Virus record (IMG/VR): IMGVR_UViG_3300027963_000035
Coordinates: 187,266-251,265 of that record
DNA length: 64,000 bases
Strand: one strand, 5' to 3'
The notes beneath the pieces were generated by a model. The model saw nothing but the letters and a program-made list of their open reading frames with translations, did not search any database and had not been told where the DNA came from. The number at the start of each line of letters is the position of its first letter. Within the stretch, counting starts at the first letter, position 1. A program made the position numbers and the translations under genes. Shown here piece after piece: positions 7,215 to 64,000 of the stretch.

Positions 7215-9075
7215 CCCTGTATTCTATGTCTTTGAGAATTTCTCGCTGTGTTTCAATTAGTGTGTCGGCAACACCACAAGATGAATCCATATTTCGTTTC
7301 CACTCATAATGCTTTTCAACACGCTTGACATTATATCCACGTTCAAGACAAAATTTTTGAAGTTCTTGAAATTTCATAGATATCTCCTATTACAAATTAT
7401 CAATATTTTTTTCAATGAAATCAGCAATATCATTGAATGAATATTCACCATCATTCATTTCAGTTAGGTATGCTTTGCCAAGCAAATCGCTTTTGACATA
7501 TCCAATATCCGATCCGATTCCTGCCCAATTTCGAACCTTTTTAGATAAAGCGCCAGTGCTGCCGTCAAAAGTATGAATGCTATCTTTATCGCTTAACTCG
7601 CCAATCCACATCAAAGATTCTTCGATATTTTCTTCTTTATTAGATTCATAGTAAATTTCACAAAGAACGCCCAAACAACAGTGGGAGGTTTTACCTTCTA
7701 CGGTTCTTTTAAGATAATTTTTACCCTGAGTATAGTCACCAGATCGTAATGCTTCGGCCCACTTTTCTGCTATTTCTTTTTTCATTTTATTTTCTTAATC
7801 AAATCCTAACAGAATATAAAATCAAATATCTGTATATAAGTTGGAGGACAAAATGAAATACAGATTGTTAGTGATTTTTTTAGTTTCTTTTTTAATTGGA
7901 TCGTTTTCCCTTAATGTGATTCACTATGAAGCCATGATTAGAGCAGAAAACGATAAAAAGTTCAATGAAAATTTCTATTCAGAAATTATAAACAAATTAC
8001 ATAAGAGAATAATAGAGTCAGAAATTTAATGTATTGGGTTTATTTTTTCCACCAATTGGCATCATCATTGTCCTCGTTGTGAATATCTAATCTTTTTGAT
8101 TCTAGTTTGACTATTTCATAAAGAGCATCTAATTGGTCTGAAAGAATATCTACTCTTTTAGATAAGAGACTATTAATTTCATCTTGTAGTTTCATTTCTT
8201 TTTGAATATTTCTAGATAAAATCGCAACTGTGCAGACAATGCCGATCAGATAACTGATGATGAAAATCAAAATGTCTGTGGTTGTCATTATTACTCTATA
8301 AGCACTTTAATCTGGGCATTCAATTATTAGATGGGAATCGTCATTGGCGTAACATTCTACTTGAGTTTTTTGATTGATAAGTGTTTCTGTAGTATTTCGT
8401 GCAAAAACTCTTAACAACTCCCTTAGATCATCTACATCCAGGTCTGTTTTAATACGGAAACAATAATGACGATAAGTTTGAGACTTTATTCTTTCTATTG
8501 CACCGTCAAGATTTTTACTGAGAAGAATTAAATGATCTTTTATTTTCCTGACACATTTTAACTCTTTTTTATCAAGATGCCAATCAAAATAAACTACACG
8601 GATCTTTTTCTTTAGAAATTTTTCAATTTCTTTTAGATCTTTTTCCACCGCTTCTTTCAGCAGGGTTTTTGGGTCAACGAAATTGTCAAGTAGTTTTTTA
8701 TTCATTTACTTGAATTTTGTCATCTACAATAAAAGAATCAATAAATTTAGCCAGTTCTTTTAGTTCATTTCTGGTGATCGGAGGTTGAACATAATGGCTG
8801 CTTAAACTAATGTTAAGATTATCTCCATTTTCCTTTAAATGAAAAATGAAATTTTGGCCGGTGTAAGTGTGCTTGGTTTCCATTAGTTATCATCCTTAAC
8901 AATTTAGTAACTGCACTCTTTTAGGTCACGCTCAATAGTCTTTTCAATTAGTTCATTAATAAATTCTAAATCATAAACTTTCATGTTGTATTCTTCCATG
9001 AGTTTAAGAATTTTTTCACCTAGTTCGCAGAAATTGTTTTCCATAACCTAGGCTCCTAGTAAGGACATTGGGGCG

Positions 9076-9453
9076 TTAGACTGAAACTTCTTCTTCGTCT
9101 TTCATTTCAAAGACTGTGGGGGCTTTAAAATCCCTATTTCCCGTCATCCAACTCTTGATCTTCATTTCACGAAAGTAATCACTAACTGTGGGGATAAATC
9201 CCAAATCTTCTTTAACGTGCTGTTCACCAATAAAACGAACAGGAATTTCTCTGCCGTTACTATTGGTGATTGTAATGCCGAAAATCTTTTCACACATAAA
9301 GATTCCTTCGCTATGATGCCTTAAAGCACGATGGCGAATATCGGCCATATGACTCTTGCTTTCATCAAACCAATCATGAATGGCCTGATAATCGGCGGGA
9401 ATTCCTCCCCACTTTTTAGCACTACTGATAGAGTGATGATATGGGTGAGACAT
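9076..9453 (-). CDS. Conserved His-rich phage protein (DUF6915-like)
   Basis: HPYHHSISSAKKWGG...IHDWFDESK...RHRALRHHSEG...EQHVKEDLG. Confidence 0.7.
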   Translation of the reverse strand: MSHPYHHSISSAKKWGGIPADYQAIHDWFDESKSHMADIRHRALRHHSEGIFMCEKIFGITITNSNGREIPVRFIGEQHVKEDLGFIPTVSDYFREMKIKSWMTGNRDFKAPTVFEMKDEEEVSV

Positions 9454-9728
9454 TACTTCAGCCTCTTGTTCTTAGGACGATTATCGGCAATGGCAGTATT
9501 GCCGTGAATCTCACTAGGATCAAGATTACAACCGTTCAAAAGATGCTTGCAATATCGGCGGCTACAATATGCAGGGCAAGAACAACCCCAACGACCAGAT
9601 TCCTTATTCTGTGCAACAATATAGATGCGATTGCTGCTTTCGCTGCGAATCTGAATACGGTTAGTCCACTGTGCATTATCTGGCAGACTAACACCACCAG
9701 CCGGCATACGAATCGTAATATCACTCAT
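9453..9728 (-). CDS. SWIM zinc-finger protein
   Basis: WGCSCPAY...CKH (CxC-xn-CxH). Confidence 0.75.
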   Translation of the reverse strand: MSDITIRMPAGGVSLPDNAQWTNRIQIRSESSNRIYIVAQNKESGRWGCSCPAYCSRRYCKHLLNGCNLDPSEIHGNTAIADNRPKNKRLK

Positions 9729-9807
9729 TTATTTTTCTCCTGTATTTGTGAAGTCTACCCGATACCAAACCGTACCGCAGGGAAACCAGGAGGGCAAGGA
9801 GGGGGGA

Positions 9808-10422
9808 TTATATTTCAAGACTACAAGTTTCTAATTCATTTAAGCATCTAAAATTAGTTCCATTGACTGTCATTTGCCAACTCTTATGGTAGTGTCCAAA
9901 ATACCAACTTTTTGGTTGGTAAATATTAAACAATTCTTGCAAGAAATATCCTGTTTGATTTTGATACATCTGAGTATGTGGATCCAACAAATAAGGAGAA
10001 ATAGTTTCCGGACAATCATGCGTGAGCATAATATCCGGCTTGATGCTTCTATAAAGTTCCCTAGCCTTCATGAATTGTTCAACAGACACTTGTTCTTCTG
10101 ACCACCAATCAATTCCGATAGTTCTGTATTGTTTATCAATACTATATGCTCCACGGTAGTAGAAAAAATCTATTCCGTTGAAATTAACCATGTATCCATA
10201 GTCGCCAAGATAATGTGGAATATTAATTATTTTTGAATAGTTATCGTGATTACCGCCGACAATAACAAACTTTTTTGGATCGACATTATCTAATGTAGAA
10301 AAATCGAAACCCAGGTCGCCAATTTGGACTATGTATTCATGACGATCTTTCTCACGAATTATTTCGTGCATACGTCTATATTTGCCGTGAACATCACCCA
10401 AAATAGTAATAATTTTTTTCAT
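9808..10422 (-). CDS. Calcineurin-like metallophosphoesterase
   Basis: GDVHG, GDLG, GNHD, THD and GHYH motifs. Confidence 0.9.
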   Translation of the reverse strand: MKKIITILGDVHGKYRRMHEIIREKDRHEYIVQIGDLGFDFSTLDNVDPKKFVIVGGNHDNYSKIINIPHYLGDYGYMVNFNGIDFFYYRGAYSIDKQYRTIGIDWWSEEQVSVEQFMKARELYRSIKPDIMLTHDCPETISPYLLDPHTQMYQNQTGYFLQELFNIYQPKSWYFGHYHKSWQMTVNGTNFRCLNELETCSLEI

Positions 10423-10434
10423 AAAAAATAAAAT

Positions 10435-10495
10435 AACCCTCCGCACGAACCTATTAGGGTCACGAACCTATTAGAGTGTCGTGCGGAGGGTTTTT
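10435..10495. terminator. Bidirectional terminator-like hairpin with an internal 14-nt direct repeat
   Basis: AACCCTCCGCACGA...TCGTGCGGAGGGTT, with CACGAACCTATTAG present twice; A/T runs on both flanks. Confidence 0.6.
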
Positions 10496-10509
10496 AACAA
10501 TAAATTAGA

Positions 10510-10917
10510 TTAGCGATAACGGCGGCAGCAATACCATTTGCCATTATTGCCTTGTGCATAACCTACGTCAACAGTCGTGAGGTTGCTATTAGCATAGCAG
10601 CAGTTGTTGTATGCGGCCTGTTGGGAGGAACCGCTCCCGCAACCCTCATACCCGCTGTTGCCTCCCCAGTGACCAACACGGCCCGTACGAGCCATGATTT
10701 CGGCAACACCCTGAGCCGAACTGGTATCGCTATAACTTCTGGTTGGAGTTTCAGAAGTATAACTATATTGCCGTGGGGTATCTCCCCCAGTATAACTGTA
10801 TGTCTTTGGGGCAGAATAAGTCGGGGTATTATAGGTGTTATAACTGCGTCGAGGACGAGCGTGAGCAACACCACTAATCAGAACACAAACAAAAAGAGCA
10901 GCAACAAGACGATTCAT
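10510..10917 (-). CDS. Secreted Cys-containing protein (signal peptide)
   Basis: MNRLVAALFVCVLISGVAHA|RPRR...; C-terminal CC motifs. Confidence 0.65.
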   Translation of the reverse strand: MNRLVAALFVCVLISGVAHARPRRSYNTYNTPTYSAPKTYSYTGGDTPRQYSYTSETPTRSYSDTSSAQGVAEIMARTGRVGHWGGNSGYEGCGSGSSQQAAYNNCCYANSNLTTVDVGYAQGNNGKWYCCRRYR

Positions 10918-21497: not shown

Positions 21498-21500
21498 ACG

Positions 21501-21764
21501 TCCGAAGGGTGGGATTCGAACCCACAGTCTACAAATTCAAGTTTGTGTGATTTTCACCACTCCTTGGACTTTGTCTTCACCATATCTTACGATTTAGGTG
21601 GTCGCCGTTAAGTCTCTACACGTTCCCTTACGGGCTTCGCTCGGCATTGCCATATGCTCACGCATTTAGGTTTCACCGAATTTGACGACATCCCATACGA
21701 AGTTTCCAATCGTATGGCACGAAAATTCATGAGTTTGTTGCATTAACCGTTTTGCTACCTTCGG
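21501..21764 (-). tRNA. tRNA-CAT (probably Ile2) interrupted by a group I intron
   Basis: Spliced cloverleaf: acceptor CCGAAGG/CCTTCGG plus A, anticodon arm ACAAA-CTCAT^AA-TTTGT, T-arm GTGGG-TTCGAAT-CCCAC. Adjacent to tilS. Confidence 0.85.
21538..21728 (-). ncRNA. Group I intron (IC3, Azoarcus-like), 191 nt
   Basis: U before the 5' splice site; terminal G; IGS GTG; core AAATTCGGTGAAA, AATGCCGAGC, GTAGAGACT, AAGACAAAGTCC; CCTAA/TATGG tetraloop-receptor sequences. Confidence 0.9.
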
Positions 21765-21780
21765 AAATTAACCAACTGTG

Positions 21781-22434
21781 CTAGTCTAGAATTACCGTCT
21801 TATTCTTCAAGTTTTTTTCAATTCTCCTTGAACAATATTTTTCTAGACTTAACTTTTGTTTTTTCATTTCTGGAATGATTGTTTGACGAATCCAATTTCT
21901 TCTGCTTCCTTTGACAACCTTATTGGTTTCGTCCTCCACAGTATAGCAATTCCATTTATTCCTGTCAACGTACTCTTGAAAATCTTTTTTCTTACTTAAT
22001 AGAAAAGGATGGATGATCTTGAATCCATCGAACTCGCTAATTAATTCAAAAGGATTGTGATTGGGTTGTCCACGAAAACAATTAATTAAATAGCTTTCCA
22101 CATAATCATTGAGATGATGAGCAGTGATTACATAACCTTCGTAATCCACAACCTCTTTATAAAAATTTAAGCGGGCCTCCCTGCAATCTTTTTCTGTTTT
22201 TAAATTTTGGCCCTTACCCACAATGCCCTTTAATCCTAATTTACCACAAAGTTCATGGAACTTATTTTCCATGGCATGGTTCTGTTCTCTTAGATTATGA
22301 TTAAAGTGCAATGGAGTAATGTTGTATCCCTTGCTTCTCAACCAAAATAAAGAAGATACGCTATCGACACCCATGCTTACGGCAACATAGCAATGAGTTT
22401 CTTTTGAAACAATTTCTTTAATGATCTTGATCAA
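21781..22434 (-). CDS. tilS: tRNA(Ile)-lysidine synthetase, minimal PP-loop form
   Basis: VAVSMGVDS, HFNHNLR, TAHHLNDYVES, HPFL, EDETN, RNWIR. Confidence 0.85.
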   Translation of the reverse strand: MIKIIKEIVSKETHCYVAVSMGVDSVSSLFWLRSKGYNITPLHFNHNLREQNHAMENKFHELCGKLGLKGIVGKGQNLKTEKDCREARLNFYKEVVDYEGYVITAHHLNDYVESYLINCFRGQPNHNPFELISEFDGFKIIHPFLLSKKKDFQEYVDRNKWNCYTVEDETNKVVKGSRRNWIRQTIIPEMKKQKLSLEKYCSRRIEKNLKNKTVILD

Positions 22435-25336: not shown

Positions 25337-25418
25337 TGGTTGATGCAGGATTCGAACCTGCGAAGCTAATAGCATTTGATTTACAGTCAAACCCCTTTGA
25401 CCACTCGGGAAATCAACC
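25337..25418 (-). tRNA. tRNA-Tyr(GTA)
   Basis: Acceptor GGTTGAT/ATCAACC plus A; TTTGA-CTGTAAA-TCAAA; long variable arm; GCAGG-TTCGAAT-CCTGC. Confidence 0.95.
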
Positions 25419-25704
25419 TATATTATTTAAAGTAGACTTCAGTAGCAGCACCCAAAGCAATTGATGATCCTGCTACAACACCAAATGTAAGGAGACATTG
25501 CCAAACAATTTCTCCTGTCAATCCACCCCAAATACCTGCAATTGCAATAACAGCAGAAGATAAAATCAAAAAGCAAAGGGTGGAACCAACGATCTTTTTT
25601 ATTTTTAGATTGTTGTTGTTATTGACGATTTTTTTCATGTTTTCCTTTAGTTGAATAAAAATTTAAAACTCTACTATATATATAGTATAAAGAGTTTTAA
25701 ATTT

Positions 25705-26163
25705 ATGAAATACACATACACACATGAAACTTTAAAAGAACTTGTTGAAAGTTCAACATCAGTGAGACAAGTTCTTTTTAAATTAAAATTAGTTGCTGCC
25801 GGTGGTAATTACGCCACAATAAAAGCATATATTAAGAAGTTTAATTTAGACACTTCTCACTTTAAGGGTCACGGATGGTCTAAAGGGTTTGTTCTACCAC
25901 CAAAAAAACCAATTGAATCATATCTTGTTAAAGGAAGTAACACTCAAAGTTTCAAACTAAAAAAGAAGTTAATTAGAGAAAAAATCTTTGAACATAAATG
26001 CATGAATTGCAAGAATACTCATTGGCTTGGGAATTTAATTCCAATAGAACTTCACCATAAAGATGGAGATTCTTCAAACAATGAGCTTTCTAATTTAGAA
26101 ATTCTTTGTTACAACTGCCACGGTTTGACACCAAACTTTCGTGGTAAAAACAAGAAAAAATAA
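25705..26163 (+). CDS. Free-standing HNH endonuclease
   Basis: KCMNC...ELHHKDGDSSNNELSNLEILCYNCH; the stop codon abuts the tRNA-Leu 3' end. Confidence 0.9.
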   Translation: MKYTYTHETLKELVESSTSVRQVLFKLKLVAAGGNYATIKAYIKKFNLDTSHFKGHGWSKGFVLPPKKPIESYLVKGSNTQSFKLKKKLIREKIFEHKCMNCKNTHWLGNLIPIELHHKDGDSSNNELSNLEILCYNCHGLTPNFRGKNKKK

Positions 26164-26164
26164 A

Positions 26165-26451
26165 TGCCAAAGGCGGGGGTCGAACCCGCACAGGATGTTA
26201 TCCCGAGGGATTTTCTTACCACTATAGTTTTCACTACCCTTGCGGTTTGTAGTCTGGACTTTACCTTCACCATAACTTCTCAGTTTTAGGTGCTGCCCGT
26301 CAAGTCTCTACACCTTCCTGATTTCTCAGGCTTGGCTCGGTATTAGCAGTTAAGCCTTCACCGAATTTGAGCAGTTCTGCTCTAAAAGTTTCCTTTTAGG
26401 CACTCAATTTAATATCAAGTCCCTTGCGTCTGCCTATTTCGCCACTTTGGC
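26165..26451 (-). tRNA. tRNA-Leu(TAA) interrupted by a group I intron after U34
   Basis: Acceptor GCCAAAG/CTTTGGC plus A; AGGGA-CTT^AAAA-TCCCT; long variable arm. Confidence 0.9.
26215..26416 (-). ncRNA. Group I intron, 202 nt
   Basis: IGS TT-GAG; core AAATTCGGTGAA, AATACCGAGC, GTAGAGACT, AAGGTAAAGTCC; terminal G. Confidence 0.9.
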
Positions 26452-26603
26452 TTTTTAAAACCAAACCCAAATAAATTTTCAAAGAACAACCAGCAATCGT
26501 CACTCCCTCCAACCGTACCGGAGGGAAACTTGGTTTTTCACTTTAACACACTTTTAAACTTTTTTCAAGTAGAATTTCTAATACTTTTCTGCATAACTAT
26601 CAT

Positions 26604-27923
26604 TCATTTTACACCTTTAAGGTAATTTTTATATTCTTCTAAGAAAATCTTTTCTTCATTCTTTGGATTAGAATTAGAGTGGCCTTTTGCTTGAACAACT
26701 TTGTTATTTTTAATTTCAATTGTTACTAGTGGTTTTTGAATTTCAGAGTTTAACCTTAAAAACAAAATAGTAGAATTCTTATTAGCGATATCTTCGTCAT
26801 AGCTTGCAACGCAATGATTTAGCTTTATTCCTTCTTGAATTAAATCCTCGTGTTTAACTGGGGCTATTACGCTATACCTTTCATTTTTATATTCATATTT
26901 TTTAAAAGTTTTGCAAACTTTAGAGAACCTATTTTTAAAAGTTCTACTTTTTAAGACCTCATAATTTTTGCTAGTTATATCATGAAGTGTTTTAAGATAT
27001 CTTGGATACTTATCAAAATCATTTTTCATTTGAACGTTCATTTTTGCATAATCATGAAGAATTGATAATGCATCTTCAATATCTTCAATTCCCTGATTAG
27101 GCAACCCCCTGCAAATATAATCTGTTAATTTAAATTTGTCATAACCCATCTTTATTAAGATATTAAAATATTCATCGTGCATATCTGGAAACCGATTATA
27201 GTTGTCAATTGCATACTTTATCACATCTACATTTTTAACCTCGCACCACCGTTCCAGAGTTGCATAATCGACTAATCTCATATAATCAGCCGGAACACTA
27301 CTATATTCAGCAACCATTGTATCTAATTTTTCAATATAGTAATCCAAGCTATACTTTTTAAAATCACTTATAGTTTTAATATTATAATCAAAATAGATTT
27401 GTGCGAATTCTAGATGGTGGAATTTTTCTTTATTTTTTTGTAAAAAGTCCCACTTTGCAAATTTTTCAAAATCCCCCATAATCACAGGATTATTTAAAAT
27501 ACTAAAAAGATCGCTCCTATCAGGTACATAGTAATCTTCACGGCTGGTGATAATGAAGAATAACTGAATCCATTCTTCTTTGCACAATTTATAAATATCT
27601 TTATCTCTCGCCAATCCAGAAAGATTGCCAGATGCAAATTTTATACATGACTTAGGATTTTTAATAAGAGTATTTGTCTCTGCGTCATAGAACTTATTAT
27701 CAATCAGAGAATATTTAACATTTGTTTTGTTGCTAAAATTAAAAATTAAACTTTTCTTGTCCTCAGACTCACTAACACTTTTCAAGTATTGATAGTGCTT
27801 AATTTTTGATTCTTTTTTCTTCTTTTCAGCTAAATGTATTTGGTTTATAAGTTCTTTGGTTGTGAAACCATTAACTTGTATAGTTGCTGTTTTCTTGCCA
27901 TTATTAATTTTGATTGTTCTCAT
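26604..27923 (-). CDS. PcfJ-domain protein
   Basis: DYAKM...KYPRYLKTLHD...DLIQEGIKLNHCVASY...LFLR...VTIEI...QAKGHSN. The real start is probably the ATG at 27923, because the longer ORF call extends into the array. Confidence 0.85.
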   Translation of the reverse strand: MRTIKINNGKKTATIQVNGFTTKELINQIHLAEKKKKESKIKHYQYLKSVSESEDKKSLIFNFSNKTNVKYSLIDNKFYDAETNTLIKNPKSCIKFASGNLSGLARDKDIYKLCKEEWIQLFFIITSREDYYVPDRSDLFSILNNPVIMGDFEKFAKWDFLQKNKEKFHHLEFAQIYFDYNIKTISDFKKYSLDYYIEKLDTMVAEYSSVPADYMRLVDYATLERWCEVKNVDVIKYAIDNYNRFPDMHDEYFNILIKMGYDKFKLTDYICRGLPNQGIEDIEDALSILHDYAKMNVQMKNDFDKYPRYLKTLHDITSKNYEVLKSRTFKNRFSKVCKTFKKYEYKNERYSVIAPVKHEDLIQEGIKLNHCVASYDEDIANKNSTILFLRLNSEIQKPLVTIEIKNNKVVQAKGHSNSNPKNEEKIFLEEYKNYLKGVK

Positions 27924-27935
27924 TTTACTTGTTAT

Positions 27936-28625
27936 GGACACCCTGTTCGTTATTAAAATCAGAGGGTTTTGGTTCACTCTCGCACATTGTTAAAATCGCA
28001 CAGCTAGGTTCACTAAACCATCATGTTAAATCTTCTTATTTGGTTCACTCTCGCACATTGTTAAAATACCGGCACTAGGTTCACTCTTCACGCATGTAAA
28101 ATCAGATTTTATGGTTCACTCGACAACTATGTTAAAATCGAAGGGCTAGGTTCACTCTTCATCTATGTTAAAATCAAGCAGGTTGGTTCACTCAACTACC
28201 TTGTTAAAATATCGAATGATGGTTCACTCACCAAATTTGTTAAAATTCCCGACTGTGGTTCACTCCAGAGGTCTGTTTAAATCCGGACATATGGTTCACT
28301 CGAATGCGGTGTTAAAATCGCCGTTTGTGATTCACTCACTATACATGTAAAATCTCTCACATTGGTTCACTTAACTACCTTGTTGAAATCGTCGGGCTTG
28401 GTTCGCTCCGGCAGTATGTAAAAATCCAGTCTGATGACTCACTCAACGTTCATGTTAAAATCGTTAATAATGGTTCACTTCTCGTCCTTGTTAAAATCAA
28501 GCAGGTTGGTTCACTCCGGCAAAATGAAAAAATCTGGGCTTCTGGTTCACTCATGGACGCATGTTAAAATCAAGGAAACTGGTTCACTCTTGACTTTTGT
28601 TAAAATCTCAGCCACTGGTTCACTC
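27936..28625 (-). repeat. TIGR-like dual-repeat guide-RNA array (~18 full 36-nt units plus one degenerate terminal unit)
   Basis: The + strand unit is GGTTCACTC-N8-TGTTAAAATC-N9. There are 19 GGTTCACTC-type boxes from 27971 to 28625 with a 35-37 nt period, and the variable segments are mostly unique. Confidence 0.9.
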
Positions 28626-28653
28626 CAGTTAATTTTCAACTTGTTCAAAACTC

Positions 28654-28675
28654 TATACCCAGACTTTAACTTATT
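28654..28675 (-). promoter_or_regulatory. Candidate promoter in the array leader (ATAAGTTAAAGTCTGGGTA)
   Basis: A near-identical copy lies at 30012-30032 and a variant at 30355-30372. Each is upstream of a minus-strand gene or the array. Confidence 0.5.
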
Positions 28676-30566
28676 GATTATCATTTAGTAAAAGTGTGCA
28701 TTATTATGCACTTTTTCAATTCTTTTTCAATTTCTTTAACACTCATTTTGAAATAATGGGATGGTATCTGTAAGTAATCTCCTACAATAAATTCAAAAAG
28801 CATTAATTTACCTTTTGAATTTTTTAGATAAATTTCTAGTGGTGAATCGTAACAACCACTATTGATTAATTCAACTGTCACTAGGGGCGTACCATCGGTT
28901 TCTAAATTACCCACGTTATCAACAATCATGTGATTAGGGGTAAAAGGTTTGTGCTTCCATTTTTCACGATTTCCATTTTCATCAACAACGTCAAAACATT
29001 CACATATAACTTTTTTTATTTGATCGATTTGCTTTTTGGAAGATTTAACTATAGGCTGTGGGTCGTACGCATCCTCTCCGAGTAAACTGAAGGCGGTGCA
29101 TGAATCACACTCGCACATTTCGGTATAATAAATTTTATTTAATTTCATTTCTTTGTAACTTTTTCGTCCCTATAAATTTTTGTGACTAATAATAAGATTT
29201 AAAAATCACACGCCCCGTCCTCTACAGGATCCATGTATTCCAGCAAGGGAGTTATTCTATCCTCTGCCATTTCCAGTATTACATCTTCGTCAACGTCTTT
29301 TCCTATAACTTTCTTACTTACTATATGAAGATTGTATATTTCGTAGAAACAATAACCTTCGCCGTTGTATTCATCGGTTTGTACCGTCAAATCCATTTTT
29401 ATATCAACCTCGACAAACGAATCTAGGCCGATGAGAAATTGTAAGTGTATAATTTTGCCGCCCGAAACAAAACCATCTAACTTTCTTTGAATTTTTTGTG
29501 TTACGCAAGTGTTGAGAACATCCTTAAAATTTGATTTCATAATTATCTTTTAGTCTCCTTGTTGGTCTTGTCGCTATTTCGTGGCTAGAAATCTTTTCCT
29601 GTAAATTTTTGCTCGTTCGGCGTCTTTGTTTTTGAGTCCAGTAGGTACAATTAGTCTACCGTGCCATCCTTCTGGAGCCTTTATATTGGCTTCTACGCAC
29701 AATCTAAGGACTTTCGGTAGGAGATTACACTCCAAGCCCCGCAGTTCACCATAGGTGAAGGTAAGGAAAAGGGCTTGTTGCATGATTTTGTGGGCTTCGT
29801 GGATTGTTACATCTTTATTTGACAATCTACTTGATAAGAGATGTTCTATGTTTCTATCGTATTCTTTTACAAACTCGTCGCACGAAAAGATTATTTTTGC
29901 TGCTTTTTTCCTAAAAGATGCGGGTCCGTTTTCAAAGACGTTAGTTGCCCATGCACGGAGTTTGTTTGCGAGTCTAATTGCTGTGTCCATGTTTCTTCTC
30001 AATAAACTGCACGTACCTAGACTTTAACTTATCAAATAAAACTATAAGGTTTTAATGAATAAAAAGTTAAAACAACTCCAACATTATAAGCAGAACTTGG
30101 ATCTGTTTTTATAACCTTAAAAACATTATGATCAATTAATTTAAGAACATCTTTTGAGGAAAGACAACGCATACAATTTTTTCCATCAAAAATTCCAACA
30201 TCATTCTGTTCGACTTTATCTATTTCTATTTGGCAGAGAAAGTATTCTTCTTCATCTTTAGACATATCAACTAAAAATTTTTCATTTATACTGTTTAGGA
30301 CATCGCCTAAAGTGAAATCTTTAAAAAAATTTAACTTTTTATTCATTGTTTACTTACCCGGACATTGACTTAAACAGTTTTTCAATAATCTGTTACTCTG
30401 AGCCACTATTATCTAAACTCTGAAAAAGTGCATCAACATCTTCAATACTATATGTGTAGTTAAAATGACCATTATCTTTAGCGTGTTTCATATCTTCTAC
30501 AAGATTTTCCAAAGCATCCAAGATAATTTCCATATCATGCTTTTCAATATAGTAATTCATGTTTTT

Positions 30567-31490
30567 CTACTTCTTCAAATACTCATCAATATCCAAAAGA
30601 TTTGGCTGAATGATATGATGGGTGTGTCCCAAATGAGCCATGACATAAGGCTTGGGGCAATCAATTCCTTCAACCTTGCACCAAAGTTCATGGACATTAC
30701 TCAGGAACAACTTAACCACCCAACGCCTTGCCATAGCATCCACATGACCATCTGGCAGAATTCCACTCTTATACTTAGCGATAACTTCCTTGTTCTTGAA
30801 GTTCTTTGAATTCAAGACAGAATCAGCAAGTTCCTTGAATCCGCCTTCAAGGTTCTTTTTTACAAGAAACTCCTTCTGGGTCTTGTAAAGCTTACCATAG
30901 AAGCACTCCTCCTTACCAGAGAACTTCATGAAACTCTGCCCGACCTTCCAGCACAGGGTTTTAAGGCTGGCGTTCCAGGGACGCTTTTGACCCTTTTCCC
31001 ACTTACTTGTGGGATCGAGACCAGCATAACGCCAAATAGCACCAGCGGTCTTTGCCTTATTGATGTCAATATGAGCAACAAGACCAGCAGTAATCACAGG
31101 ACCGATTCCGTAAACCTTATCCTTCAAAATCTTTGCAATCAAAAAACTATCAGTCCAGTGATCCATAGCCCGTTTGATTTGAGTTTCAAGAACTTCTGTT
31201 TGATCGTTCAAGAAACTAAAGAGTTCATGAGGCTCTTTATCCTTGCCAAAAGCGGTGATCTGATTGGTGCTTCGCTTACGATTCTCTTGAATCATATAAT
31301 AGTAATCAACAATATACCTCACTTCATCCTTGGTGAGGGTCTTAATCTTATTAGTGAGATCTTTATTGAGCCTAGCAACAGTCCCAAGACTTGTCAGGCT
31401 ATCTGGCATTAGGCTATCTGCAATCTTCTTGCTTGAAATGCCCTTGCCGCAAGTGGGACACTTCTTCTTTGTTACACTTTCCTTTGACAT
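30567..31490 (-). CDS. IS110/Nop-domain RNA-binding protein lacking RuvC/HNH (TasA-like)
   Basis: A coiled-coil segment, then VYGIGPVITAGLVAHID...AGAIWRYAGLDP...WNASLKTLCW...FYGKLY...HVDAMARRWVVKLFL (IS110 Transposase_20/Nop-like). No N-terminal DEDD domain. About 2 kb from the 36-nt array. Confidence 0.85.
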   Translation of the reverse strand: MSKESVTKKKCPTCGKGISSKKIADSLMPDSLTSLGTVARLNKDLTNKIKTLTKDEVRYIVDYYYMIQENRKRSTNQITAFGKDKEPHELFSFLNDQTEVLETQIKRAMDHWTDSFLIAKILKDKVYGIGPVITAGLVAHIDINKAKTAGAIWRYAGLDPTSKWEKGQKRPWNASLKTLCWKVGQSFMKFSGKEECFYGKLYKTQKEFLVKKNLEGGFKELADSVLNSKNFKNKEVIAKYKSGILPDGHVDAMARRWVVKLFLSNVHELWCKVEGIDCPKPYVMAHLGHTHHIIQPNLLDIDEYLKK

Positions 31491-32252: not shown

Positions 32253-33131
32253 TCAAACCGTACCGGAAGGAAACTCGAGTGTTTCAAAAACACTTTCAAG
32301 TTCTTCTGATAATCTTCCTTTGATTACTTCGACTGCATATTGATAAAGAAATTCTGGACTAGTCTTGATGACTTCTTCTGCTTCAATCCATCTTCCTTTA
32401 ATTACATCTTTAGCGTAACCACAGGCATACTCTGGACTAGTTTTTATGGTTTCTTCTGCGTCAACCCAGCGACCTTCGATTACGTCTCTAGCATAATAAT
32501 AGGCATATCGTGGATCAGTTTTAATAATCCCTTCTGATTCGATCCATCTGCCTTTAATTATATCTTTGGCGTAAAGATACATATAGTGGATTAAAACCCT
32601 CTCAGCTTCAATCCATCTATCTTTTAGGACATCTTTGGTGTAATAGTAAACATATGCAGGACTAGTTTTAATAATTTTTTCTGCTTCAATCCAGCGATCT
32701 TTAATTATATCTCTAGCATAGAGATAGGCATAATATGGGTCAGTCTTAATAATCTCTTCTGCTTCATTCCAACGATTTTTAATTACATCTCTGGAATAAA
32801 GATAAGCATACTGGGGATCACTCTTGATAATCTCTTCGCACTCAATCCACCGTCCCTTGATAACATCTTTGGCATAATGATGGATATATTCTGGACGGCT
32901 ATTCTTTATGATTTCTTCAACTTCAATCCACCGGTCTTTAATTACATCCCTAGCATAGCAGTAAGCATAATATGGTTCTGTCTTAATAATTGAAAACAAA
33001 GCTGTCTTTTGAATATTGTTGGGCTTTTCCCCATTAATCATAGTTCCATTTTTAATGAAACAATCAACATCCTCATAAGTAACGTTTGAGATGAACTGGT
33101 GATATTTTTCTGAGTAACTAGTCATTTTCAC
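32253..33131 (-). CDS. Tandem ~25-aa repeat protein (YAYxYARDVIKGRWIEAEEIIKTSP, ~10 repeats)
   Basis: Repeats are directly visible in both protein and DNA. Confidence 0.8.
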   Translation of the reverse strand: MKMTSYSEKYHQFISNVTYEDVDCFIKNGTMINGEKPNNIQKTALFSIIKTEPYYAYCYARDVIKDRWIEVEEIIKNSRPEYIHHYAKDVIKGRWIECEEIIKSDPQYAYLYSRDVIKNRWNEAEEIIKTDPYYAYLYARDIIKDRWIEAEKIIKTSPAYVYYYTKDVLKDRWIEAERVLIHYMYLYAKDIIKGRWIESEGIIKTDPRYAYYYARDVIEGRWVDAEETIKTSPEYACGYAKDVIKGRWIEAEEVIKTSPEFLYQYAVEVIKGRLSEELESVFETLEFPSGTV

Positions 33132-36269: not shown

Positions 36270-36456
36270 TTTTATTTCCTATTTCATTTATAAGTTATAC
36301 GTTTATAGTCTGACATCAGAAACAACTTCATAGGTAGTATGACAAAGTTTCTTTGCTTCTGCAAGTTCTTTTACAATTTCCTTTGAGCGATTATGCCAAT
36401 AGGTCACATTATTTTTTGCAACATCGGCATTTTCATAACGAATAGCATGACAGTTT

Positions 36457-36582
36457 CTCCACAACCAGAAAAATAAAGGATCTTTTTGTTGAACAAAACT
36501 CCACAACCAGAAAAATAAAGGATCTTTTTGTTGAACAAAACTCCACAACCAGAAAAATAAAGGATATTTTTGTTGAACAAAA
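36457..36582. repeat. 42-bp in-frame tandem repeat x3 within ORF 36303-36875
   Basis: CTCCACAACCAGAAAAATAAAGGATCTTTTTGTTGAACAAAA; encodes FVQQKDPLFFWLWS. Confidence 0.9.
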
Positions 36583-37544
36583 AATCCACGAAATTCTCCA
36601 TTGCTGTAGTACTGCTCGACAACTCTAAATTTGATTTTTTTATAAACTTCTACAACCCTATTTTTAAAGGGTTTAAATATATATTCATTTTTTTGAGCTT
36701 CATCAAGAGTAATAGGATAGAAATGACAATCTTTATACAGCCAAAAAAATAATGGATTTTGTTTTTGGATAAAATATCCAGTAGATCCAGAGGGATAAAT
36801 TCTTTTAATAATTCTAGTGCGATTGAACATTTTATTTACCTCTTGTAATATGTTGTTTAGTGGTTTAATTTTCATTTTTTTAATATCTCTTTTTTATAAT
36901 ATTCTAGGTATTCAATAGCCCAAATATCTTCTTGCTTCCACCTGTCGATGTCCGTTTCTTTAGACCAATTTTTATATTCATCTGAGTCGTAGTTTTTATT
37001 TTTTAATATATCAATAGCCTGTTCTATTGTTGAGTTCTTAGAAAATGCACTCATGATCTTACGTGCCGTTCCTCCCCAATGTTTTAAGTTGGGTGTGCTA
37101 TCTATTCCAAGATGTTCTTCCGCATAGCATTTTGCACAAGTTTGAGGCTCATAAACACAATCTCCACAATGACTACTTTGTAGTTCTTCTATAAAATATT
37201 TTATAGATTCTTCGTCGTATTTTGTTTCGATAAATTTTTCAGAGATATCACGTAATTTATTTTGGATATTATCTAAATTAGTTTCTTTTTTTTCTCTTAT
37301 ATCAAATTCAATCCAAGAAACACTTTCTCCAATCATGTCCCATTTGTATTTCCAAAACAATAACTGTTTTTCAGTATCGTCAAGAAATACTTTACTTGCT
37401 AATGGGTTTTCATTATATTCTATTTTCATTTTCTAATTTCTCAAGCCTTTTGTAAATTTTTTTAAATCTAAAGGCAGTTGCCCAAGAATCTATGTAAAGG
37501 TAAGCAATTATCATTATATAAAAATATTTAAATGATTCAATCAT

Positions 37545-61088: not shown

Positions 61089-64000
61089 TTATAGATAATA
61101 AATTCCTGGGGAACCTATATTGCCAATCCCTGCTGACCGGTATGCACCTAATACTCCATTTGAATTCAATGTCCCAGCAGCATTCGAAATCAAAGTTCCA
61201 TTAGAGTCATACCGCCAATAGAAAGTAACCCCAGTTGTGGCTACTGCAAAATTAGATAGCGGCAATGGCGGCACTCTTGTAACTTCTGATCGACTTGAAT
61301 TGTATATTACAACTCCGTCCCCATTGGCCCCGAAACTTACTCCACTACCAGAATAAGTGGCAATTTTTACTCCACTTCCTAAACTCCAAAAACTCTTGAA
61401 TGCTGGAACCGCCGTATTCGGGGTTGCAGTTTCTATACAAACAACTGATTCTCCTGCGGATATAGTTGTCCATCCGCCATAAGGAACAAGTGATACTGCA
61501 CTGGAGTATAGGAATGAATCGTCGTCCATCTTCCAACCAGTAATATCAACAGGCAAACCTCCAAAATTTGTCAACTCGAACCAGTCTCCAGTTCCACCCG
61601 CTCCACTTGAACTCATGACTTCCGTTATTCGAATTATTCCAGGACCCAGTGTTGATGTAGGTGTTGATGTAGGTGTTGATGTAGGTGTTGATGTTGGGTA
61701 TGGTGGCAAAGTTGTCGGCACATCTTGATTATCTTGATTAGTTTGTGTGGGAGTCGATGTTTGTGTGGGAGTCGATGTTTGTGTGGGAGTTGATGTTTGT
61801 GTGGGAGTTGATGTGGGTGCAGGTGGTAAATAAAAGGGACGAGAATATGCTGTGTGTAATTTTACATATGCACCACCACCTTCAGCTGCAGTATAGGGGA
61901 ATATAAAAAACTGTAATCCTTCCGAGTAATCGGAAGTTAGGCTTCTTAGGTCGATTGTTACTGTGCATTCACTTATTGCGCCATACATAATACAAGAACC
62001 TAAATCTTTGGAAGGATCCGTTAAAGGATAAGATCCATAATAAACAAGATACGAAACATTGGAGATATTATCATTTCCAATATTGGATATAACACAATCC
62101 CAAGATAAAGTAACAAAATTACCATCTTGAACCGCCGTAAAGTTATTTGGTAAGTTTGGACACTTTAAAAACTCTGTTATCTCGCCTTGGCGACTTTGTA
62201 AGAAAGTGATTATTAAATTTTTAGAATTTAAAATAGACTGTTGTGTTGTTCCTATTGGATTTTTCTTATCACTTAATAAACTTGCTATTTTTTTGTCATA
62301 CACGTAATTAACATAACTGTAAATATCATTAAATACTGTGTCATCCTCTTCAAATGTTGATGTTTGTATCCAATTATGAAAGCTTAGCAACTCAGATATA
62401 AAAATATCTAAAGTTTCTCTATGAGAAAGACATTGATCAAAGAAATAAGAATTATTAAGTGTGTATTGAAAGCCCATAGTCTCAAAAATTAAACCTGATC
62501 CATCGAAGTACGTGTCTGCTCCCCAAGGTAATAATCTAAATTTTCCACTTGAGTCGCTATGATAAACGCTATTATTACCAAAAGAAACATAACCATCATT
62601 GTGGCCGCAATAAAGCTCTATAACACAATACTTCATCAGCTGTTCGATATGTGCACAAGTTAACATATTATTATACCAACTTAAACCTTGTGGATTCTTG
62701 ATCGAGTCTTCCACATACGAGAATGATTGAACTCTATTCAAAAAGTTTTCAAGATCACCTAGCCCAGAAACACTAGGATCAGCATAATCAACATCATAGG
62801 CAATAGAATTTGCCACAAATTCATATGGATTTGTAGTTATATTTACTTCATATAAATGTTGTGTATTATTTTGTCCAAATAATCTTTCCAGCGTAGAAAC
62901 ATTTCTATATTCTTCTATCGCAAAGTACTCTCCGAAATCAATGGAAAATTCCAAATCAGAACTTATTGATGGAAGAGAAAATTCCGTTCCGCCGATTGTT
63001 GAAGAAACTTTAAAGGTTGTAGAAGTTAAACTGTTTGATATAGCGTAAAAGACTTGATTTTCTGAGACTCCACTTAATCCTATAAATTTAACACCCATTC
63101 CTTCTATAAGGTAATGCTCTATATTTGTGGTAACAATGTTACCGTCTATGCTGGTGATTTTTAATGTGGGATCATTGATAAAAAGCCTGCAAAAGTTTGT
63201 TTTAGGTGCGGGCATACCATACTCATTAAATATTTTGTATATGATATGTTGTTTTATTTTAGACGCATCTTGCAAAGAATTATTTAATGCCAAATATTTT
63301 ACAGAATTTATTCCGTTTATAAAATTATTTGACTTTATCTTTAATGGTATTTTTCTATTGTATGGCGTTAAAGAACCATATCCTTTTCCTCTTGCACTCA
63401 CAGTAGATTTTGGGAATGCCGTTCCAGAATAAGAAACATTCAACTCAACAGAAACATAAGTTTGCTTCCAAGTCTCAGGAGGATTTTGAACTATGGTTGC
63501 CGGAAGAAATCTTTCTACATCATAAACATTATTGGTGGAAATTACCTTATTCCACTCTGAACGGGCAGAACTGTTTATTCTTAAATTAAATTCTAAATTA
63601 TTACTATTAAAAGGGTTAGGAGATAATGTGGGCGTAGGTGTTAGTGTAGGTGTACTTGTTAGTGTTGGTGTACTTGTTGATGTTAGCGTAGGTGTTAGTG
63701 TAGGTGTTAGTGTAGGTGTTAGTGTAGGTGTTAGTGTAGGTGTACTTGTTGATGTAGGAGTTCTTGTTGATGTTAGCGTAGGTGTTAGTGTAGACGTACT
63801 TGTTGATGTAGGAGTTCTTGTTGATGTTAGCGTAGGTGTTAGTGTAGACGTACTTGTTGATGTAGGAGTTCTTGTTGATGTTAGCGTAGGTGTTAGTGTA
63901 GACGTACTTGTTGATGTAGGAGTTCTTGTTGATGTTAGCGTAGGTGTTAGTGTAGACGTACTTGTTGATGTAGGAGTTCTTGTTGATGTTAGCGTAGGTG
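61089..64000 (-). CDS. CotH-kinase-like + lamin-tail (LTD) domain protein with Thr/Pro/Ser linkers (5' end beyond window)
   Basis: LALNNSLQDASKIKQ...GMPAPKTNF...HNDGY...NN...LLPWGADTYF (CotH-like); IRITEVM...DWFELTN...VDITGWKMDD (LTD). The frame stays open upstream of 63443 into the T/P/S repeats. Confidence 0.75.
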   Translation of the reverse strand, partial: PTLTSTRTPTSTSTSTLTPTLTSTRTPTSTSTSTLTPTLTSTRTPTSTSTSTLTPTLTSTRTPTSTSTSTLTPTLTSTRTPTSTSTPTLTPTLTPTLTPTLTPTLTSTSTPTLTSTPTLTPTPTLSPNPFNSNNLEFNLRINSSARSEWNKVISTNNVYDVERFLPATIVQNPPETWKQTYVSVELNVSYSGTAFPKSTVSARGKGYGSLTPYNRKIPLKIKSNNFINGINSVKYLALNNSLQDASKIKQHIIYKIFNEYGMPAPKTNFCRLFINDPTLKITSIDGNIVTTNIEHYLIEGMGVKFIGLSGVSENQVFYAISNSLTSTTFKVSSTIGGTEFSLPSISSDLEFSIDFGEYFAIEEYRNVSTLERLFGQNNTQHLYEVNITTNPYEFVANSIAYDVDYADPSVSGLGDLENFLNRVQSFSYVEDSIKNPQGLSWYNNMLTCAHIEQLMKYCVIELYCGHNDGYVSFGNNSVYHSDSSGKFRLLPWGADTYFDGSGLIFETMGFQYTLNNSYFFDQCLSHRETLDIFISELLSFHNWIQTSTFEEDDTVFNDIYSYVNYVYDKKIASLLSDKKNPIGTTQQSILNSKNLIITFLQSRQGEITEFLKCPNLPNNFTAVQDGNFVTLSWDCVISNIGNDNISNVSYLVYYGSYPLTDPSKDLGSCIMYGAISECTVTIDLRSLTSDYSEGLQFFIFPYTAAEGGGAYVKLHTAYSRPFYLPPAPTSTPTQTSTPTQTSTPTQTSTPTQTNQDNQDVPTTLPPYPTSTPTSTPTSTPTSTLGPGIIRITEVMSSSGAGGTGDWFELTNFGGLPVDITGWKMDDDSFLYSSAVSLVPYGGWTTISAGESVVCIETATPNTAVPAFKSFWSLGSGVKIATYSGSGVSFGANGDGVVIYNSSRSEVTRVPPLPLSNFAVATTGVTFYWRYDSNGTLISNAAGTLNSNGVLGAYRSAGIGNIGSPGIYYL
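63631..64000 (-). repeat. 54-bp / 12-bp coding tandem repeats (TPTLTSTRTPTSTSTSTL)
   Basis: GTTAGCGTAGGTGTTAGTGTAGACGTACTTGTTGATGTAGGAGTTCTTGTTGAT repeated at least 4 times. Confidence 0.9.

Follow-up and report, generated by a model that had tools for sequence, protein, structure and literature searches.

A Probable Dual-Repeat TIGR-TasA System in an Uncultured Jumbo Phage

Introduction

Can a protein without any nuclease domain and an array of short repeats located at some distance from its gene form an RNA-guided system in a phage, and, if so, what would such a system be for? The question is raised by a locus on contig IMGVR_UViG_3300027963_000035, which has 251,265 bp and whose source is an uncultured jumbo phage of 251 kb. 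The window, that is, the whole stretch of DNA analysed here, comprises the final 64 kb of this contig. Its minus strand contains the gene tasA (30567–31490) and an array of alternating repeats and spacers (27967–28625). We think that both very probably belong to a dual-repeat TIGR-TasA system of phage origin, with 18 guides of about 36 nt that would direct DNA binding without cutting and with a repressor role. Systems of this kind are already known, and the locus adds one more phage TIGR-TasA to the family described in 2025.

A Solo Tas Protein

The original prediction had read in this stretch a 307-aa minus-strand protein of TIGR-TasA type with motifs of the IS110 C-terminal/Nop region. The open reading frame (ORF) and the quoted motifs are present, and the assignment is borne out by the profile score, by matches to TasH and TasR and by the predicted fold. 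The NCBIfam model NF052498 (TIGR-Tas system RNA-guided endonuclease) is matched with 184.7 bits against a cut-off of 100, over profile positions 1–214 of 215, and all 40 aligned homologues likewise match it. The IS110 transposase model NF033542 gives 26.7 bits against a cut-off of 140, over residues 69–162 only. A sequence search (phmmer) against solved structures retrieved SpTasH (E 1.4e-16) and TaTasR (E 8.6e-12); with a profile of the 40 homologues, the E-values were 1.5e-22 for TaTasR, 6.7e-17 for SpTasH, 4e-6 for IS621 and 4e-5 for ISCro4. The AlphaFold2 model of TasA is all-helical, with a predicted local distance difference test (pLDDT) of 87.3 and a predicted template-modelling score (pTM) of 0.81. 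In a Foldseek search of the PDB, its best 11 matches were TasH and TasR chains (probability 1.00, target-normalised template-modelling (TM) score 0.53–0.73), followed by the IS621 and ISCro4 recombinases. The check for a Nop fold that had been proposed with the prediction recovers, by AlphaFold and profile, a fold of the Tas/IS110 type (TasH, TasR, IS621, ISCro4); Nop5 is not among the Foldseek matches listed for the model.

The protein can be divided into three parts. Residues 1–40 form an N-terminal tail of low confidence with a single CxxC motif and no histidine. A long helical pair follows in the AlphaFold2 model (helices 54–83 and 89–114), and the RNA-binding C-terminal domain extends from about residue 117 to residue 297. 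Homology with TaTasR begins at residue 124 of that protein and homology with SpTasH at its residue 82 (equivalent to profile position 39–40), in both cases past the RuvC or HNH domain, and TasA has only about 40–55 residues N-terminal to the shared Tas region. No HNH or RuvC family was found in TasA with Pfam at E-values up to 0.1, the only match being a borderline one to Transposase_20 (20.9 bits against a cut-off of 21.3). Because so short a stretch cannot accommodate an HNH or RuvC domain, we assign the protein to the solo TasA subtype. The claim that neither domain is present therefore holds, as seen from the short tail and from the absence of nuclease families.

The codons of Y282 to H289 lie at 30624–30647 on the minus strand. 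These two residues fall on Y289 and H296 of SpTasH in a residue-level phmmer alignment, so that they can be regarded as a putative dyad for the processing of pre-tigRNA. In SpTasH, the pair is a metal-independent dyad that cuts pre-tigRNA, and Y/H dyads are present in dual-repeat systems and missing from stem-loop systems (PMC13421893; bioRxiv 10.64898/2026.09.09.750476). H289 is invariant in 40/40 homologues.

The Guide Array

The array at 27967–28625 (minus strand) is formed by 18 units of 35–37 nt and a terminal truncated edge repeat. Each unit consists of an edge repeat GAGTGAACCA of 10 nt, a spacer A of 8 nt, a loop repeat GATTTTAACA of 10 nt and a spacer B of 8 nt. There are 19 edge repeats, from 28625 down to 27967 and spaced by 35–37 nt, the truncated one being at 27967–27979. 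The pattern AGTGAACC-N9-GATTTTAAC, with up to two mismatches allowed, is found 16 times, always on the minus strand and within 27989–28624, and not once in 100 dinucleotide-preserving shuffles. These results bear out the description of about 18 dual-spacer units on the minus strand with a period of 36 ± 1 nt. In the units of 35 or 37 nt the change in length occurs mostly in the U/A run at the centre of the loop.

Two details of the original prediction had to be corrected. The spacers had been given as 9 and 8 nt long. Along the unit, the information per position reveals two conserved blocks of 10 positions, each of them followed by 8 variable ones, which defines the unit as edge (10), spacer A (8), loop (10) and spacer B (8). 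GAGTGAACC is followed by a conserved A, and therefore the repeats have 10 nt and the spacers 8 nt each. For the wider family we compiled 203 units with 138 unique 8+8 guides, from repeat scans and from arrays in hand; counting the six most frequent classes, 181/203 of its edge repeats end in CA. The second detail is the downstream end, which had been described as degenerate. It is mid-array that the weaker units (6, 7 and 9) are found, units 16–18 being well formed, and what looked like a 19th unit is the truncated edge repeat running into an inserted gene. This end of the array was set by comparison with two related loci, L003 and L150.

The outer motif GA..CA (positions 1–2 and 9–10), which is box C/D-like, is found in 166/203 edge repeats and in 172/203 loop repeats of the family. 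Positions 3 and 8 of the repeats are occupied by G-C in 190/203 edges and by U-A in 187/203 loops. Of the 40 units of L181, a 52%-identical system, 15 have G-C and 14 have U-A in the loop; in the edge, A-U is found in 18 and G.U in 15. Such covariation of positions 3 and 8 would be expected if a symmetric dimer read edge and loop alike, by analogy with TaTasR (PMC12045711). No palindrome or repeat structure linking spacers A and B was found, and Rfam has no known RNA family over the array.

In the arrays of the family (window, L002, L003, L128 and L138–L150), the spacers have an average guanine-plus-cytosine (G+C) content of 47.7% (46–51% in each of the eight arrays checked) compared to 35.1% for the window, and the repeats are AT-rich. 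The high value fits foreign targets of higher G+C content or selection for stable duplexes of 8 bp.

Just upstream of the first edge repeat there is a leader of 31 nt (28626–28656, minus strand), which is identical in the related locus L144, the DNA beyond it being unrelated. On the other side, a 10-bp hairpin (26503–26527, minus strand) is located within a block of 74 nt (26504–26577), which in L003 and L150 comes after the array. This hairpin, which lacks a U-tract in the window phage, may be a terminator or a structure that protects the RNA end. Transcription of the array from the plus strand was considered and rejected because of the repeat orientation in the SpTIGR array, the terminator of the related locus L128 and the adjacency of array and tasA stop codon in relatives.

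A separate observation concerns the 18-nt motif TAAGTTAAAGTCTRGGTA, which occurs three times on the minus strand (28656–28673, 30014–30031 and 30355–30372; 0.09 occurrences expected). All copies of TAAGTTAAAGTCTRGGTA are intergenic, on the gene strand, and just upstream of orf142, orf104 or the array leader. Possible roles for the motif are those of a local promoter, a processing site or a cassette boundary.

Comparison with Known Systems

The closest solved relative is SpTIGR-TasH of Salicola phage CGphi29 (PDB 9W03, 9W04, 21KL), with about 22–24% identity and TM scores of up to 0.73. Both systems have 10-nt repeats, 8-nt spacers and a Y/H dyad, their edge repeats are similar (AAGCGAGCCA in SpTIGR and GAGTGAACCA in the window), and the repeats have the same orientation relative to the tas gene, which supports the dual-repeat TIGR layout that had been proposed for the array. 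The loops are different, being AAGACAACCA in SpTIGR and the U-rich GATTTTAACA in the window. SpTIGR has G-C at positions 3–8 and C-G at positions 4–7, whereas the window array has U-A at 4–7. In the SpTIGR array, read in the direction of tasH, a terminator comes after a truncated edge repeat. The main difference between the proteins is that SpTasH has an N-terminal HNH domain and cuts both DNA strands, while TasA of the window has a tail of about 40 residues in its place.

Dual-repeat TIGR-TasA systems of the FpTasA type (Flavonifractor plautii; PMC12045711) share with the window a solo Nop-domain Tas of about 260–310 aa, the 36-nt period, alternating edge and loop repeats, two short spacers, location of the array on the tas strand and carriage by phages. 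They differ in having spacers of 9+9 nt instead of 8+8 nt and outer motifs UG...CCA instead of GA...CA; moreover, tasA and array are separated by 1.9 kb in the window, and unrelated small ORFs have been inserted in the interval.

The Nop-domain core, the coiled-coil dimer and two-strand recognition by tandem spacers are also common to TaTasR (PDB 9MTY) and to the dead TasR repressors PateTasR and CsTasR, although TasA of the window has no RuvC domain such as that of TaTasR. Dead TasR proteins and MbTasA are RNA-guided repressors, a role that the window TasA would share. Those characterised so far use stem-loop guides and have no Y/H loop, whereas the window TasA keeps this loop. With the bridge-RNA recombinases of the IS110/IS621 group and with Nop5 of box C/D snoRNPs, the window TasA has in common a homologous RNA-binding domain (profile E 4e-6 for IS621, Foldseek probability 1.00), but the DEDD recombinase domain, the bridge RNA and the transposon ends are missing from the window system. 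CRISPR arrays have a single repeat of 25–36 nt (PMC12045711) and spacers of similar size; the window array has two repeats of 10 nt and spacers of 8 nt.

Proposed Mechanism

From what has been published on SpTasH, TaTasR, FpTasA and MbTasA, a mechanism can be proposed. Transcription of the array would run leftward and would either start at its own leader or result from read-through. Dimers of TasA would attach to each unit and cleave every edge repeat internally by means of Y282/H289, as SpTasH performs its own pre-tigRNA cuts via its Y/H dyad (PMC13421893), and this would free 18 tigRNAs of about 36 nt, composed roughly of AACCA, spacer A, loop, spacer B and GAGUG. Processing of arrays into 36-nt RNAs and dual-strand targeting have been reported (PMC12045711).

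Each guide would then direct a TasA dimer to a DNA site of 16 bp, where spacer A would base-pair with one strand and spacer B, over the neighbouring stretch, with the opposite one. In the known systems each spacer pairs with a different DNA strand at adjacent half-sites, and gaps of 0–2 bp are tolerated (PMC12045711). As the spacers would lie on opposite strands, one strand of the target would read 5'-(spacer B)(reverse complement of spacer A)-3'; this order of half-sites is deduced from the reported 3' overhangs of 8 nt, which only one order can produce. Having no nuclease, the bound complex would block transcription of the target, and possibly replication. In E. coli, TasA represses genes at which it is targeted, and it binds target DNA in vitro (bioRxiv 10.64898/2026.09.09.750476), and the dual-repeat FpTasA binds DNA and reaches targets in human cells (bioRxiv 10.64898/2026.08.11.744272). 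The original prediction of binding without cutting, for example as repression, agrees with the first of these sets of experiments, which came later.

Gene and Array in Related Loci

The distance from the tasA stop codon to the first array unit is 1,941 nt on the same strand, in agreement with the earlier description of a protein gene about 2 kb upstream on the array strand and of five small ORFs in between. These ORFs (55, 104, 142, 113 and 155 aa; 28681–30560, minus strand) have no Pfam, PHROG or NCBIfam family. Are they, and the gene that follows the array, parts of the system? The related loci provide an answer. In L002 (TasA 93% identical) there are about 47 units (8895–10580), the first of them 5 nt after the tasA stop codon, and in L141 (92%) and L149 (91%) the array directly adjoins tasA; the five ORFs are absent from these three loci, and only tasA and the array are conserved together. 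L144 (99.7%) has 1,128 nt between tasA and array with other DNA in it, including a different insert of 0.9 kb, and in L003 (99%) the five ORFs are partly deleted.

Downstream, the terminal edge repeat is abutted by a PcfJ-like gene cassette (26578–27966, minus strand; PF14284, E 7.5e-25) that is specific to the window phage. L003 and L150 are devoid of the PcfJ-like gene, and the end of their array joins the sequence at window position 26577 directly. Since neither the five ORFs nor the PcfJ-like gene is conserved with tasA and array, we consider them cargo and have rejected a role for them in the system. In the lineage of the window, the insertion of such variable cassettes has driven gene and array apart.

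The window array is on the tasA strand at 1,941 nt, and an inserted gene comes after its end. Adjacency of array and tasA holds in L002, L141, L149 and L128 (TasA 80%, array about 125 nt off), and a terminator after the truncated edge repeat is seen in SpTIGR and in L128, where a hairpin and a T-run follow the last one. Flexible array positions have also been reported in a published survey (bioRxiv 10.64898/2026.09.09.750476). At L181, the arrays are about 1 kb away, past four small ORFs. No array was found within flanks of up to 8 kb per side in L006, L007, L129 and L131 (TasA 76–86%), whose arrays may be distal or absent, and the array lineage of L138, L142 and L143 has no tasA in the 600–900 nt upstream. 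From these tasA relatives with no array in their flanks and this array lineage with no tasA just upstream, we conclude that detachment of gene and array is common in this clade.

Cassettes have also entered an array itself. In L003, a 1.5-kb deletion fuses orf104 in frame into array unit 1 (L003 9355–11830 compared to window 28607–30126), and an insertion of 2.4 kb with five ORFs, the last of them coding for an XRE-type helix-turn-helix protein, has entered unit 3, of which 21 nt are duplicated at the flanks of the insertion.

Guide Turnover and Swapped Guides

The same repeats carry other guide sets in at least six lineages: window/L003/L144/L150, L002/L146, L138/L142/L143/L145, L141, L149 and L128. 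Guide content turns over quickly while the flanks stay near-identical: the flanking DNA of the window and L003 is 96–98% identical, the arrays are about 80% identical, and 11 of the 18 window guides are common to L003. We regard this contrast, together with the recurrence of guides in arrays that otherwise differ, as a sign of function. In L002, there is a segmental duplication of several units, in which the repeats are retained, including a loop variant of 11 nt, and the duplicated guides differ at one to four of the 16 spacer positions (for example, TGCGCGAA/GCATCAAC versus TACGCGAC/GCATCGAG). These duplicated units, with their repeats kept and their spacers changed, lead us to think that arrays grow by duplication and that the spacers then diverge.

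A few guides recur across otherwise different arrays, and two of these have their spacers in swapped order. The guide of window unit 4 (28480–28515), ACCTGCTT/AGGACGAG, is present as AGGACGAA/ACCTGCTT in L002 unit 8 (from 9149), with one mismatch, and it occurs unswapped, twice, in the L002-like array of L146. The guide of window unit 6 (28408–28443), TCAGACTG/TACTGCCG, is exactly swapped to TACTGCCG/TCAGACTG in L138 unit 2 (from 969) and in L142 and L143. About 2e-4 swapped matches with up to one mismatch would be expected by chance among some 20,000 guide pairs. Simple descent of a unit, its inversion or a shift in register cannot account for such a swap. No mention of natural swapped guides or of array duplication was found in the two key papers or by a full-text search; swapped guides are functional in vitro (PMC12045711).

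Because swapped spacers specify the same double-stranded target, the target would have been reached independently in each case. We put forward tentatively, as a possibility that falls short of being probable, that guides are gained from, or selected on, shared conserved targets of 16 bp in either orientation, related jumbo phages thereby tracking common sequences of hosts or rival elements. The spacer G+C content of 48% in a phage of 35% points in the same direction.

Target Searches and Alternative Explanations

Several observations weigh against a functional TIGR-TasA system. With regard to the protein, position 282 of the putative dyad is Y in 30 and F in 10 of the 40 homologues, that is, F in a quarter of them. 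As for the array, it lies 1.9 kb away from tasA, and several units have loops of 9 or 11 nt or mutated edge repeats. The evidence for expression, to which the conserved leader and the motif TAAGTTAAAGTCTRGGTA also belong, is weak: the promoter-like site at 28730–28703 is a consensus match only, and a weak hairpin with a T-rich tail (28696–28711) precedes the array. Finally, the searches for targets belong to the same side. A search for spacer pairs joined in both orders had been suggested, but in phage DNA it gave no exact target: none of 78 guides (from the window, L002 and L003) had an exact match in the 157 kb formed by the window and six loci with a tas gene, allowing both half-site orders and gaps of 0–2 bp, and the three distinct one-mismatch matches compare to about 1.7 expected by chance. 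The self-target check with every guide covered the last 64 kb of the 251-kb genome. In IMG/VR, scans with the inferred half-site geometry for four guides (4, 6, 12 and 17) revealed no convincing target among the matches listed, those of guides 6 and 12 being at chance level.

Guide 4 had at least 120 matches in IMG/VR, and about 70 among those listed correspond to one redundant prophage gene. The 29 matches of guide 6 are distributed as 13, 7 and 9 at gaps of 0, 1 and 2 bp, which is the chance level, and guide 12 had 40 matches with no excess at gap 0. Neither the source contig nor its two IMG/VR relatives were among the matches listed, and no locus fetched by the target scans carried a match to a second unrelated guide. 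The 16-bp site of guide 6 is exactly kept in three diverged phage proteins of over 1,000 aa (L152 at about 1751, L170 at about 4011 and L174 at about 5615; ..NLDNAxQTAAVN..), and we take it as a weak lead only, because no other guide matches these loci. Tiling of the predicted targets into longer sequences was tried and discarded, the overlap being no greater than in re-paired controls. These null results are in line with a remark in the literature on the many false positives obtained with short spacers. As targets, we consider DNA of the host or of rival mobile elements most likely, rather than the phage's own genome.

How else could the locus be explained? It might be that TasA is a targeting module, whose guides bring a separate effector (a nuclease, a recombinase or a partition protein) to the DNA, or that bending of DNA by TasA aids recombination or segregation. 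DNA bending and association with ParB were raised for TasA by Faure et al. (PMC12045711, Discussion), and an HNH endonuclease gene (25651–26163) and the PcfJ-like gene (26604–27977) are found near the array. These neighbours are not conserved, however: the PcfJ-like gene is absent from L003 and L150, the five ORFs are absent or replaced in relatives, and in L002, L141 and L149 only tasA and array remain together. As TasA alone is able to repress genes in E. coli (bioRxiv 10.64898/2026.09.09.750476), we find this explanation unlikely.

Another explanation is that the locus is a decaying or orphaned relic, in which insertions have split the array from tasA, the guides are neither expressed nor loaded, and the spacers drift neutrally. 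The 1.9-kb separation, the insertion after the array, the mutated repeats and off-length loops, the lack of an array within flanks of up to 8 kb around tasA in L006, L007, L129 and L131, and the target searches without result could be understood in this way. We nevertheless judge it very unlikely, since tasA is intact and H289 invariant, the 31-nt leader is conserved with the array, and the repeat bases and the 3–8 pair are kept in over 90% of the 203 units while the spacers differ. Guides that persist or recur in separate lineages, twice in swapped order, are not predicted by neutral drift either. The idea of an IS110-type transposase fragment beside an unrelated tandem repeat or CRISPR-like array has practically no chance of being right, as the borderline Transposase_20 match, the annotation of PHROG 4285 as 'transposase' and the same name given to some homologues by their sources are countered by an IS110 score far below cut-off, the lack of a DEDD/RuvC domain, the ranking of IS621 and ISCro4 far below TasH/TasR in Foldseek and the two alternating 10-nt repeats with 8-nt spacers, by which this reading is refuted.

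Other Features of the Window and Its Phage

The window has a G+C content of 35.1%, and its genes include rIIA- and rIIB-like proteins, a DNA ligase, an HNH endonuclease and an ATPase. Cultured phages have no DNA similarity to the region and, apart from the Salicola phage, no match to TasA. In cellular genomes, the relatives of TasA have at most 52% identity and are spread over many phyla.

ARAGORN found two tRNAs in the window, and a later search added a third one, an intron-split tRNA-Leu. This tRNA-Leu(UAA) (26165–26451, minus strand; ARAGORN intron mode) has a group I intron of 202 nt at the canonical anticodon-loop site, which Rfam recognises as Intron_gpI at 26239–26426 (50.8 bits for a gathering threshold of 50, E 3e-12). 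Related intron-bearing sequences with 77–78% identity are known from the uncultured phages LR756501/LR756503 (735 kb) and from Agrobacterium phage Atu_ph07. The tRNA-Leu adjoins the HNH endonuclease ORF (25651–26163) and a tRNA-Tyr (25337–25418). Another gene listed by ARAGORN (21500–21567) is tRNA-like but odd, its anticodon having two bases, and beside it there is an ORF for a PP-loop ATPase (21781–22434; PF01171, E 7e-26).

Other repeats are present in the window. Two genes upstream of tasA, a 292-aa ORF (32253–33131, minus strand) contains about ten repeats of 26 residues with a consensus near YAYLYARDVIKDRWIEAEEIIKTDP, detected by Tandem Repeats Finder as 78-nt repeats; the ORF was assigned to no family. 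A near-perfect 42-nt tandem repeat occurs three times at 36457–36582, inside the ORF 36303–36875, and a block of 18/54-nt repeats (63626–64000) that runs off the window end is probably part of a long repetitive structural gene.

Conclusions

The discovery value of the locus alone is modest, as some 20,000 tas loci are already known in the family, with 6,685 arrays annotated. Nevertheless, a compact system with a protein of 307 aa, spacers of 8+8 nt and an intact putative self-processing dyad is a candidate programmable DNA binder. In our opinion, the comparative series of related loci is of wider interest. It bears on two questions that the literature states as open, namely, how TIGR arrays gain spacers and what their natural targets are, and it also shows cassettes inserting into and beside arrays. 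If it is true that guides are gained from or selected on shared targets, the swapped guides would be the first evidence from nature on where TIGR spacers originate and on the sharing of their targets.

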